A stretch of 63,652 nt of DNA, the filler included, from Choristocarpus tenellus KU-1152 (taxonomy: Eukaryota > Protista > Phaeophyceae), in NCBI GenBank assembly GCA_964200185.2. It is 11 parts of 11 records of this genome, joined end to end, with 100 filler letters (N's around TTAATTAATTAA, not from the genome) between each part and the next. Parts side by side here need not be neighbours in the genome. Positions count along the whole stretch, not along the records: positions 20,258 to 25,171 come from CAXNAD020012557.1; 10 more parts are not named here. One strand, given 5' to 3'. Of this stretch, positions 20,158 through 25,271 are shown piece after piece. A program made the position numbers and the translations under genes. Below the pieces are notes generated by a model. That model saw nothing but the letters and a program-made list of their open reading frames with translations. It was not told the origin of the DNA and ran no database searches. Every line of letters begins with the position of its first letter. The first letter of the stretch is position 1.

Positions 20158-20295
20158 NNNNNNNNNNNNNNNNNNNNNNNNNNNNNNNNNNNNNNNNNNN
20201 NTTAATTAATTAANNNNNNNNNNNNNNNNNNNNNNNNNNNNNNNNNNNNNNNNNNNNGTGTAGACCCCCCCCCCCTCCCAGATACTTTGGGTCAA

Positions 20296-20629
20296 ATTTG
20301 ATTTCGGTATCTCCACACCGACCAAACTTGAGCAGCGACGTACTCCAGACCAGTTTTTTGCAAGGAGTTCAGCCCTACCAATTCATTTTTGTCCGTTTTG
20401 AAGTTGTGGCCTTCAAAATTGCGGAGGTATTCCCCCGCGTTTTTGCCATTCTTTGATCGGGACATAGCTCTCCTTCCCCGAAGCCTGGACATTCGTGGAT
20501 ACAAACCTGGAAAAGCTCTTGTTATACCCTTTCATTTGATATATATATATATTGTTGTATAACTATTGTGGTAACCCGGTGAAAAAAACTACGATTCCCA
20601 CAGAGGGAAAAGCTACTGGTACCACCTTA
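20296..20629 (-). mobile_element. Second copy of the right end of the 503-2310 TIR element
   Basis: Collinear homology with about 1975-2310, including AAGCTACTGGTACCACCTTA. Confidence 0.85.
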
Positions 20630-21686
20630 CGTAATCGAAAGCATTCGGGACCATTCAGATATGCAGTGTTGATCAAGTTGTAGATGAATTTCGTTCTGAC
20701 TACTATATATATGTATATATTTAGTTTTGAGAGCTCCAGCACCCTTCGTTGCCTGCACTCTCATGGGGGAGTGTGCAAAATAGGACAATCATGAGGTGTA
20801 CTCTATTTTTGAGTATGTGAGATTATGGTATTGGATTGAGTCCATGTGATTTAACTAATCAGATAGTACATCTAGATTATGTATGGGGTTGGGTTTTGCA
20901 ATTAAAATTCTCTGGTATAGCTGTTGACTTACATCTGAGGCACAAATAATAATATAAAAGCAATAAGAAGACACCCCACAAGGTCACTCTTCTTTTCAAG
21001 CATGTAAGGATATTGAGCAATTGGGAATCGTGTGAGACTCCACACCTTCTTGTCTTCACTACATATATACCGATCAAATAGCAATAATGCCTTTGAAGGT
21101 TAATTTCACACAACATAAGCCCTTGACAACGAATATATATATATCTACATGGAAAGGAGGATGTGTGTGTCGACCTTTTGTTTGAGACGAGTTAATGGCA
21201 GTTTGGGGATTGTAAACAGTTTAGTAGAGATCACCGATTCTATATACCTAATTGGCACCACATTTGAATACAAGGCAATATGATACCTTTCTCCGCGTTT
21301 GTTAGAAGGATGTTGAAGCCTCTCCTTACCTTTCCTTGATCTTCTCGACGTAGAAATGCCTACACTCCACGTAGGTTGACTGTCAAGGCAGCGGCCCTAC
21401 TCGCCTCCCCCTAAAATCTCGCCTTCAAAGAGGTAACAAACCTCCTCATCCTAGTCCTTCTCAATCTGCAAACTAATAAAAGGATGGAACAACCCACTGG
21501 TTGAACACAAAACATGATATATTCCTATAGATACGGTTTCATTTCATAATTATATTGAAATAGTTAATACATGTATTACAACAGTGGGGGTACCCTTTTA
21601 AGGCATGGTCGTCCCAACCAAGATCAATACTTGTTGCATCATAGTACTAACTATACTAAGGGGGGGGGTCAACAGCAACAGTCCCC

Positions 21687-24353
21687 ATGAGTCGTCAGAG
21701 CCGCCAGAGCCGTCAGAGGGGGCAGAAAGCAGTGTCTGATCCTTACACACAGGGGCTGGGTGCTCACGGGAGACAACAGAGCCCACCGAGGGGGTCACGC
21801 GACACGACTCATGGCGAAGCCATTGAGTCTTCAAGACCCGACCCTGTACGCAATGGTATTGGGCGGCACGGCCTTCATAAGGACTGTGGACGTGGTAGGC
21901 CTTCTATTTCGAACAAGGGATTTGGCAGGAAGTTAAGCAACAATCAAAATCACCCTGCTGATCGTGCCAATAACCCAATACAGCTTGGGGGACGAAGATC
22001 AAATGGGGAAGAAGATCGTGGTGTTCCAGATCAACTGATGGCAAGAGGATCGACGAAGTGCCAAAAGCAAAGGTCACAGGTGACAATTTTTGATCACCTC
22101 GTCGCCGAGAGTACCAAGCTTGTTCAGCAGCCAGTTAGGGACAGTACCGAGGGGATACACACGCCACAACGAGAACAAGGAAAGGGTGCACCTGGCCTCA
22201 AAGGTGAAAGAATTGTCAGTGACAGGACTCATCACAACCCTTCGATGCGGGATGGGGTTGTAACGCAGTCTATCAAGCCGGGAAAGAGGCGGTTTGGGCC
22301 GACAAAGAAAAAGCTTTCGGTTCTGAAAAAGCGCATTCTGTTGGACCGGGCAGAGAAGTGGCGTCTGCTCTTTGCACAGACAGATGCAGACACAGTAATG
22401 GTTACAAAGGGGATACCAAGCGAGACCGGGTCTACGGTAGGGATTGCACAGGGGGCAACCGTGGGGTTACAGCAAATTGCCAACGGAATAGACCATGGGA
22501 AAGTTGAATCTATTGAGTGCAGCAGTCAGGCGACTAATCCTCTCTTGGCTAAGGGTTCACAGGAGAAGGATGTTGGTACATTCAGAAGCATTGACTTCAG
22601 TGGCAAGCATCTCAACAATGGACATATCGCTGGGTGGAAGGTCTCGATCAGCAACCTGGTGACCGAAGAGGACATCGAAGATGATGACGAATACGAAGAG
22701 ATTGTCAAAGATACAATTGCCCTGGCAGGGCGCTTCAGTCAGGTGACCTCAGTAAGTATTCCCCGCAAGGGGGAGGATGGCGTTGGGATGGTAATCGTAG
22801 GACTTTCTTCGAAGGAAGAGGCGGAGGCAACTGTGGACGGACTTCATGGTCTCTTGGTGGGAGGTCTCACCCTCAGCGCTGTTGCTCTCCCCAACCAGGA
22901 GAATGGGGATGGGGATTCTAGAAAGCAAACGCTTGTGAGCCAGGAGGTACAGCACCAGTTCTACCGTAGCTCAAAGGAGACAATACTGACTGATGTTGCT
23001 TGTGGAGAAAGTGACGCCATTGGAACTTGTCGTGGGGGTGAAAGAGACAAGTGGGTTGTGAAGGTGATCAATTTAGTGAGTGGGGAGGATGTTGAGGACG
23101 ATGATGAGCACGCAGAGATTGTCGACAATGTGACTGTCTTGGCCAAACGCTTTGGTCGGGTTGCCTCAGTCTATGTACCTCGTGGTGGTGAAGATGGTGT
23201 GGGGACAGCAATGGTGGAATTCACATCCCTTGCAGATGCAGAGTGTGCTGTGCAAGGCCTCCACAGCTTGGTGGTGGCAGGACAAACCCTTGAAGCTGTC
23301 TTAGAGACTGGCACTGTGGGTAGTTCCTGGGCTTCCGGTGCAATTGGGAAGGGGGAGGAGAGAAAATGGGAGGGAAATGGAGCTGGTACAAACCGCTCAG
23401 GCAATGGAGGGTATGATGGGAGGAAGGGTGCTCACTGGTGCAGTGATGCAATGGTGAAAGATAGTGTAGCCACAAGTCGCAGCAATAATGTTGTAGAGGG
23501 TCTCAGGGAGGGAGAGGCCACCAATATCGGCAGAGGTATTGATGAAAATCGAGGCCACTGGAGCAGTAAAGGCTGTAGTATTGGTAATTGTGAGGGCTGG
23601 TATGTGACAGTGAAGAATCTAGTAAATGAGGGAGACCTAGAGGAGGACGATGAGTATGAGGAGGTGTGCAGAGATGTCGTGAATATGATAGGCACTGTTG
23701 GCGGTCAGCCACTTTTGTTGGATATCCCCAGAATGGGGGATAGTCGCATGGGGACAGTGTTTGCTAAATTCCGATCAGGTAAGGAGGCAGGAATAGTTGC
23801 AGAGGGTCTATGCCTCCTCAAGGTTGGGGGTAAGCTGCTTAAGACTGAGGTTCTGTGCCTTCCACCTGGTGCATCAGAGTGTTCTTCTGAACCCCTGTCG
23901 ATCAGTTCGGCTCCATTACCACTCCCTTATCGAAGAGCCCCCTTGACAACAGATAAGAGAGGGGTCCAAGGAGAGCACACGGTTGAATCTGCTCTTGGCC
24001 CTATTTCTAACTACCCTCATAGTATGGGTAAAGATGGGATGGGAGAAGAATTATCTGTGGGGCCTGGGGAATCAGTGAAAGGCTATGGTATGTTGTTGGG
24101 CGAAGGAGGACAGGCCTCTCCACCTGAGGCTCATTATGAAGACACTAAGTGTTTACCTGCTGCTGAAGAAGGTAAGGAACTGTTGGGTATCAAGAGAGTA
24201 GATGGTGTGGCTGCAGCTAGGGCTGTGGTGAGATCAGCGGAGAGAGGTGTAACGAAAGGAGGAAGCGGGAAATATTTTCCGCACAAGTACAGGGAGGCAG
24301 CGGATCTGCCCAAATTTCCATTGGATGGTTCAACCCGGGAATATGTGAACCAG
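21687..24353 (+). CDS. SECISBP2: SECIS-binding protein 2 (SBP2/SECISBP2)-like gene, large 5' exon with three U2AF65-RRM3/UHM-like repeats; the L7Ae domain is expected in downstream exons outside this contig
   Basis: 912-aa ORF. K-rich motif KPGKRRFGPTKKKLSVLKKRILLDRAEK (22275-22361) resembles the SBP2 Sec-incorporation domain KKGKQRE.PK.KKPTSLKKIILKER. REYVNQ (24336-24353) resembles the R(D/E)YCSQ motif just before SBP2 L7Ae. Donor CAG|GTAGGG at 24353/24354. Three repeats W.V.I.NLV..ED.EDD.E..EI..D......FG.V..V.IPR.GE.G.G...V.F at about 22635, 23052 and 23598. Confidence 0.75.
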
Positions 24354-25271
24354 GTAGGGAAGTTCGTCTGGTACTTTGCTGTTACCCTTTACTTTCCACA
24401 CAGAGCACTTGTGAGTACTTGGTAGGGTGAAAATGAACCTAAAGGCTATTTGGAGTATCATAACCTGGGTTGATTTTAAGAGTCAGGCTCTACGAATGTG
24501 ATATTGAGATGTAGCCCTGTGTGTATGTGAACGCTATGCAGGGTCTGAGTTTCTACCTTGTCCACATTGGTTTTATTGGTTGGTTTCAAGGCATGGGTCA
24601 GGCTATGTAGGTGCATGGTTGCAGTTGTAGAGGTTGCTGCATGCGTGGGAGTGGAGCAGTGTTGTTGAAGAACATCTCAACGAATACGCCTTCACGTTTG
24701 CAGTGCAAATGTCCATTGTTCATGTTGATGCAAGTCTGACTTCTACACTGCAGTTTGTATACAAGGAGCTTCCACAGTGCTGTTGCGCTTCCTCGAACTC
24801 CCCTCCCCCGCCCCCCCTTACCTGTACAAATTATTTGCAGGCAGGGAGTGCCAACGCACCCAGACACAAGGCATACTGCTTTCTGCGTGTGCCCAGCAAC
24901 AGATTTTGTTTTTGTTGTGATTTTATTTTTATTTTTATTTTTATTTTTTCGCTTTTAGGTTCAGATTGTTTCGTTCTTTTTTTTTTTTAGGCGCTCTGTT
25001 CTAGCATCTCATTAGGAGGCCTCTTATTACAGTCGAGAAGAGTTATTCCCTGAAAATCTCAACATCCTTTGCGTGTATGTTTTTTTTTTTTTTTTTTTTT
25101 TTTGGGGGGGGGGGGTTTTTTTTGTTTTTTTTTTTTTTTTTTTTTTTCTTGACATCTCCAACCGCGTTTTTNNNNNNNNNNNNNNNNNNNNNNNNNNNNN
25201 NNNNNNNNNNNNNNNTTAATTAATTAANNNNNNNNNNNNNNNNNNNNNNNNNNNNNNNNNNNNNNNNNNNN

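Follow-up and report, generated by a model that had tools for sequence, protein, structure and literature searches.

A probable SBP2 of the brown alga Choristocarpus tenellus with three UHM-like RRM modules between its Sec-incorporation core and its RNA-binding domain

Eukaryotes insert selenocysteine (Sec) with SBP2 as the central trans-factor, a protein that binds SECIS K-turn RNA and acts with eEFSec in UGA-to-Sec recoding. In the human protein, a domain for Sec incorporation (SID, residues 408-545) with a conserved core at K517-R543 precedes an RNA-binding domain (RBD, 623-784), and the stretch between the two is degenerate and dispensable, SID and RBD being able to work in trans (PMC2746813). 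The origin of the SID has been described as unknown, and the communication between SID and RBD as not settled (PMC2746813). Some stramenopiles have a very large selenoproteome, with 20-44 selenoprotein genes in diatoms and 82 in Aureococcus (PMC7539508).

Here we describe a locus of Choristocarpus tenellus KU-1152 (GCA_964200185.2) in which the linker between SID and RBD is occupied by folded modules. The window, that is, the whole stretch of DNA analysed, comprises 63,652 nucleotides in 11 parts joined by filler letters, and the locus lies in the piece at positions 20258-25171 (CAXNAD020012557.1); all positions are those of the window. We are confident, short of certainty, that one large exon of this piece encodes most of an SBP2, namely the SID core, three UHM-like RRM modules and the first residues of the L7Ae domain.

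The large exon and its assignment to SBP2

The sole long ORF of the piece, 912 aa on the plus strand, extends from 21687 to 24425, and G+C amounts to ~50% in its coding part versus ~40% in the flanks. As the initial annotation had proposed, a single uninterrupted exon of 2.7 kb carries both a K-rich motif (KPGKRRFG..., first residue aa 197, nt 22275) and the motif REYVNQ (aa 884-889, nt 24336-24353), immediately 3' of which stands GTAGGG; past this donor, the frame ends at 24423-24425 after unrelated residues. A gene on the minus strand was rejected, the ORFs overlapping the exon there reaching just 60-89 aa, and an Rfam scan of the piece returned no match. Apart from the modules, which are given below, the gene has these features:

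21646..21660, plus strand: likely branch point (TACTAAC) and 3' splice acceptor (TACTAAG/G, the slash marking the cut), read from the sequence 5' of the big exon
21661..24353, plus strand: large exon of the probable SBP2 gene, delimited by the ORF (listed from ATG 21687) and the X2 contig
22275..22364, plus strand: SBP2 SID core (K-rich) motif KPGKRRFGPTKKKLSVLKKRILLDRAEKWR, aa 197-226, found with profile A2 and ending in a family-specific Trp
24267..24353, plus strand: conserved pre-RBD segment GKYFPHKYREAADLPKFPLDGSTREYVNQ, the entry to the SBP2 RNA-binding domain, aligned to P0010 603-634, P0035 and the exon ends of L001/L002
24354..25171, plus strand: 5' splice donor GTAGGG and incomplete intron to the end of the piece, placed by the frame, the X2 contig and the L001/L002 intron

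Since the frame is open from 21660 to ATG 21687 and an acceptor-like sequence precedes it, a further exon upstream, coding or UTR, is likely, and the true start may be other than ATG 21687. The TACTAAC element is a yeast-like branch-point sequence 8 nt upstream of the TAAG/G acceptor (21646-21660). Upstream of the gene, 20258-21077 is a high-copy repeat, where the summed contig depth in the public runs X1-X3 amounts to thousands and joints and loose ends are numerous, against a depth of 5-15 over the gene.

These three runs, all of one organism, contain the stretch. X1 and X3 show even, DNA-like coverage over the exon and its flanks, and an X1 contig runs unbroken over 21033-25067. In X2, a single contig spans exactly 21659-24353 at a depth of 73.8, with flanks at 0-1.4 upstream of the exon and 10.3 downstream, in the intron; a second X2 contig begins at 24324 and overlaps the first by 30 nt, as expected at a graph branch. 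This depth profile indicates that X2 is probably RNA, which would mean that the exon is expressed and that its donor lies at 24353.

Searched singly against the PDB with phmmer, the K-rich and REYVNQ segments gave nothing meaningful, so that a family profile was needed. The resulting profile A2, built from 48 K-rich motifs including that of the window, had a single match in the PDB, human SBP2 (7zjw_B) at residues 513-552 (E 4.5e-7). Against A2, the window motif reaches 71 bits; it shares 77% identity with the motif of Ectocarpus P0010 and contains the SID core as known from human SBP2 (KGKQR..KK.TSLKK.ILKER). Within the family, L, K, K and L of the core are invariant, and AF2 places a helix at aa 212-236 (pLDDT ~88). 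A Trp stands right after the core (..ERLxKW..) in at least 90% of the UHM-bearing members and is absent from human SBP2 and from the UHM-less proteins P0183, P0186 and P0189.

The piece itself contains only the pre-RBD segment and the first residues of the L7Ae domain (REYVNQ), and the domain as such is seen in orthologues. The window protein is collinear with Ectocarpus P0010 from module 1 through YVNQ; P0010 scores Pfam L7Ae, and its C-terminus matches human SBP2 (7zjw_B) 632-761 with E 1.9e-31, the runner-up in the PDB having 0.0047. Its YVNQ aligns with YCSQ of human SBP2 at residue 632. The two closest relatives that have long contigs, L001 and L002, show the same YV[DN]Q at the end of the big exon and, after it, four small exons that encode the L7Ae domain; by codon, the position of the first intron is that of the window. 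These L7Ae exons (L001, 7910-10000; L002, 3585-8258) measure ~22-45 codons each and are separated by introns of 0.3-2.2 kb. With the K-rich profile matching human SBP2 alone in the PDB and the orthologues running into an SBP2-type L7Ae domain, the identity first suggested by the two motifs is well supported.

Whether the 24353 donor splices to an L7Ae exon was a check proposed in the initial annotation. In L001 and L002, the same intron is followed by L7Ae exons, but tblastn and by-eye reading of all frames found no L7Ae-coding exon in 24354-25171. The comparison predicts that the remainder of the gene's L7Ae domain lies in small downstream exons past the end of the piece. The piece closes with a TTTTAT microsatellite and extended T/G homopolymer runs (24902-24948, 25068-25171), which are probably the cause of the assembly break within the intron.

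UHM-like modules in the linker between SID and RBD

The initial annotation had located three repeated modules inside the Sec-incorporation region. Their starts at nt 22635, 23052 and 23598 were recovered exactly. The modules do not, however, fall within the SID proper, since the K-rich motif that precedes them is itself the SID core (human K517-R543), and their place is the SID-RBD linker. Their HMM envelopes are as follows:

22620..22910, plus strand: UHM-like module 1, aa 312-408 (AF2 pLDDT >90, beta-alpha-beta-beta-alpha-beta)
23037..23312, plus strand: UHM-like module 2, aa 451-542 (also recognised by phmmer, Pfam RRM_1, AF2 and Foldseek)
23583..23867, plus strand: UHM-like module 3, aa 633-727, the most divergent (AF2 pLDDT >90)

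Pairwise identity among the three is 40-52%, with 24 invariant columns, and in a tree of the modules, whose sequences are short, support for any order of duplication was low. Pfam RRM_1 matches the whole ORF with E 8.5e-7 and module 2 with E 3e-5. In a phmmer search of the ORF against the PDB, module 2 matched the UHM (RRM3) of U2AF65 (E 2.7e-7) and module 3, weakly, that of SPF45. A profile of the three modules retrieved the U2AF65 UHM first, at an E-value of 1.5e-10 that places the likeness far beyond chance, and then the UHMs of U2AF35, SPF45, RBM39, Tat-SF1 and PUF60. The profile of a 128-module family reached E-values down to 7.5e-17 on the U2AF65 UHM; with this profile, UHMs alone aligned over the full module including helix A, and ordinary RRMs from beta2 onward.

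AF2 models all three modules with pLDDT >90 in the order beta-alpha-beta-beta-alpha-beta, and module 2 alone with pLDDT 87. Because multi-RRM proteins (raver1, Prp24) dominated the Foldseek output for the 553-residue three-module model, the single-module model was used instead. The 13 top matches of module 2 were all UHMs (U2AF65, Tat-SF1, PUF60), with TM 0.69-0.77, rmsd 1.5-2.4 A and 34-36% identity to the U2AF65 UHM, and the RRM fold predicted for this module is thus nearest to known UHMs. ESM Atlas feature searches, which returned RRM or L7Ae clusters at 0.8-0.9, were uninformative.

In canonical UHMs, an R-X-F in the alpha2-beta4 loop packs against the Trp of the ligand (ULM), a peptide consisting of a basic run and then the Trp. 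The acidic helix A of UHMs is present in the three modules, which read EEDIEDDDEYEEI, GEDVEDDDEHAEI and EGDLEEDDEYEEV. Over 356 family modules, its acidic residues D15 (96%), E21 (97%), D12 (80%) and D25 (78%) are the best-conserved residues of the module and lie on one face of the helix. RNP1 and RNP2 are degenerate, with V/I/C at RNP2 position 2 and V/L/T/E at RNP1 position 3, and F/Y is kept only at RNP1 position 8 (78%). The R-X-F is absent: the aligned residues are LLV, LVV and LKV in the three modules, and of the 356 family modules 88% have I/V/L and 7% have F at the Phe position, the Arg position being M/L/R/T with R in 14%. The modules are UHM-class RRMs, and we call them UHM-like rather than canonical because they lack R-X-F despite their acidic helix A and degenerate RNPs. 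The likeness to the U2AF65 UHM noted in the initial annotation was upheld by the profiles (E 1.5e-10 to 7.5e-17) and by Foldseek.

Distribution in stramenopiles and elsewhere

An exhaustive search of cluster representatives gave 209 matches, the best 150 of which were examined for domain order. An SBP2-type C-terminal domain was found in 110 of these 150, most of which show an LKKxIL motif, then 2-5 modules and then the L7Ae domain. By domain order, the layout appears to be common to at least 110 cluster representatives, whose sources are brown algae, diatoms and oomycetes. Named members include Ectocarpus species, Laminaria digitata and Hapterophycus canaliculatus among the brown algae, as well as Chrysoparadoxa australica, the diatom Corethron hystrix and the oomycetes Aphanomyces and Saprolegnia. 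Oomycete proteins have 2 modules, those of brown algae 3 and those of diatoms 3-5. A tree of the L7Ae domains consists of one large clade with the Corethron sequence, two outliers and a pair formed by a brown alga and Chrysoparadoxa. Where a narrow lineage-specific fusion had been envisaged, the recurrence of 2-5 modules in brown algae, Chrysoparadoxa, diatoms and oomycetes argues instead for a stramenopile-wide layout.

Beyond these members, P0176-P0178 and P0193 are SBP2 homologues with the SID core and Trp, two UHM-like modules missed by Pfam, and an L7Ae domain. In EukProt, P0176 is labelled as the foraminifer Bolivina argentea; either the layout extends to Rhizaria or this sequence is a contaminant. 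SBP2s without UHM comprise P0183, P0186, P0189, P0190 and one fish protein. Among them, the protist proteins P0186 (550 aa) and P0189 (517 aa) have PAM2-like motifs in the SID-RBD linker (DAPEFVP twice; PF07145 precomputed for P0186), which may be a PABP-binding add-on, and both have a long charged C-terminal tail. P0190/P0195 (EukProt), an SBP2-type L7Ae protein lacking UHMs, has zf-C2H2_jaz domains (PF12171, PF12874), another lineage-specific add-on, and a Q-rich N-terminus.

Word-indexed searches returned the query alone for the whole ORF and close relatives alone for the L7Ae region of P0010. In databases, the UHM-bearing proteins are named 'RRM domain-containing protein', 'L7Ae-like K-turn-binding protein', 'hypothetical' or 'unnamed', and never SBP2. 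A full-text literature search (SBP2 with UHM or RRM; SBP2 in stramenopiles) found no description of the architecture and no paper linking SBP2 with such domains, in keeping with the initial annotation, and algal selenoproteome papers score SBP2 just as present or absent. The architecture is apparently an undescribed variant of SBP2.

Possible roles of the modules and comparison with known systems

We tentatively propose that the modules are protein-binding units of the SID-RBD linker whose acidic helix A takes a basic ligand, thereby tuning or scaffolding recoding; we regard this as a real possibility that falls short of being probable. Placed between SID and RBD, the modules would bind protein rather than RNA, because the aromatic residues of RNP1 and RNP2 are mostly absent and the acidic residues of helix A are conserved. 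The ligand to which each module would present this helix (D/E 78-97% on one face) would be basic: in the simplest case the protein's own SID core helix, itself basic and ending in Trp, or else some basic partner, for example eEFSec or a ribosomal protein. The modules would in this way tune or scaffold the interplay of SID, RBD and ribosome behind UGA-to-Sec recoding.

The presence of the Trp in UHM-bearing SBP2s and its absence from UHM-less ones suggests the basic core helix, which ends in KW, as a candidate cis ligand of the modules, with the caveat that this co-occurrence concerns few, related lineages. AF2 places the Trp within the helix, whereas known ULMs bind in extended form, and the modules have no R-X-F, which in canonical UHMs grips the Trp of the ULM; the AF2 pTM of 0.39 corresponds to no confident inter-domain packing. 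A more specific version, in which modules lacking R-X-F bind the Trp-ended core helix in cis as a switch that gates SID-RBD contact and hence eEFSec or ribosome engagement, is rather doubtful.

Other readings of the locus were weighed against this proposal. The ORF would not encode a functional SBP2 at all if it belonged to a paralogue or truncated copy without L7Ae, or to a chimeric assembly, and the piece does end in low-complexity sequence without an L7Ae exon. We consider this very improbable, since the 2.7-kb ORF is intact, conservation extends to both the SID core and the pre-RBD motif, L001 and L002 have their L7Ae exons after the intron position at which this exon stops, the X1 DNA contig is unbroken from 21033 to 25067, and X2 depth is high specifically on the exon. 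If the protein is an SBP2, its modules could still act as canonical UHMs that dock Trp-containing ULMs (SF1, SF3b155, U2AF65) and so couple nuclear selenoprotein mRNP assembly to splicing or NMD avoidance, a connection already raised in the initial annotation. The conserved acidic helix A fits such a role, as do the top sequence and structure matches, which are the UHMs of U2AF65, Tat-SF1, PUF60, RBM39, SPF45 and U2AF35. The replacement of R-X-F by LLV, LVV and LKV, with F in 7% and R in 14% of the 356 family modules, nevertheless weakens the proposed tie to canonical ULM-bearing splicing factors, and we consider this role unlikely.

A role as extra RNA-binding RRMs, contacting SECIS, selenoprotein mRNA or rRNA expansion segments and raising affinity or selectivity, seems no likelier than the splicing connection. 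It would suit the RRM fold and the fact that SBP2 itself binds RNA and the ribosome, and the deeper profile also matches many RNA-binding RRMs over beta2-beta4. Alignment over the whole module including helix A is, however, restricted to UHMs, the aromatics at RNP2 position 2 and RNP1 position 3 are mostly absent, and the surface is highly acidic. Protein binding through the acidic helix A remains our preferred, if tentative, reading.

Where the animal linker is dispensable, stramenopile SBP2s have 2-5 folded and strongly conserved UHM-like modules, which suggest that the recoding machinery has unknown partners or regulates itself, and which provide folded handles for pull-downs. The finding extends the UHM class beyond splicing factors into translation, in a form lacking R-X-F, and allows stramenopile proteins named 'RRM domain-containing' or 'hypothetical' to be annotated as SBP2. 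If the switch doubted above were true, it would be a regulatory layer of Sec recoding that animals lack, present in lineages among which are the largest eukaryotic selenoproteomes known.

The closest counterparts of the window protein are Ectocarpus CAM9808295.1, Corethron hystrix A0A7S1B9S1, Saprolegnia diclina SDRG_07389 and Aphanomyces RHY28742.1, which share the SID core with its Trp, the UHM-like modules and the SBP2 L7Ae domain but differ in module count, with an overall identity of 30-47%. The modules resemble the UHMs of U2AF65 (RRM3), Tat-SF1, PUF60, RBM39/CAPERalpha, SPF45 and U2AF35 in their RRM fold, degenerate RNPs and acidic helix A. Unlike those UHMs, they lack R-X-F, and they form an array of 2-5 in a translation-recoding factor, whereas the UHM of a splicing factor is single.

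With metazoan SBP2/SECISBP2 (human 7zjw chain B), the window protein has in common the SID core (human 513-552, aa 197-231 here), the start of the RBD (human YCSQ at 632, YVNQ here) and, in its orthologues, the L7Ae domain (E 1.9e-31). It is without similarity to the metazoan N-terminal half, and the Lys that follows the core in the human protein is here a conserved Trp. The distance from the core to the RBD, ~80 aa in human SBP2, is ~650 aa in the window protein and accommodates three folded UHM-like modules.
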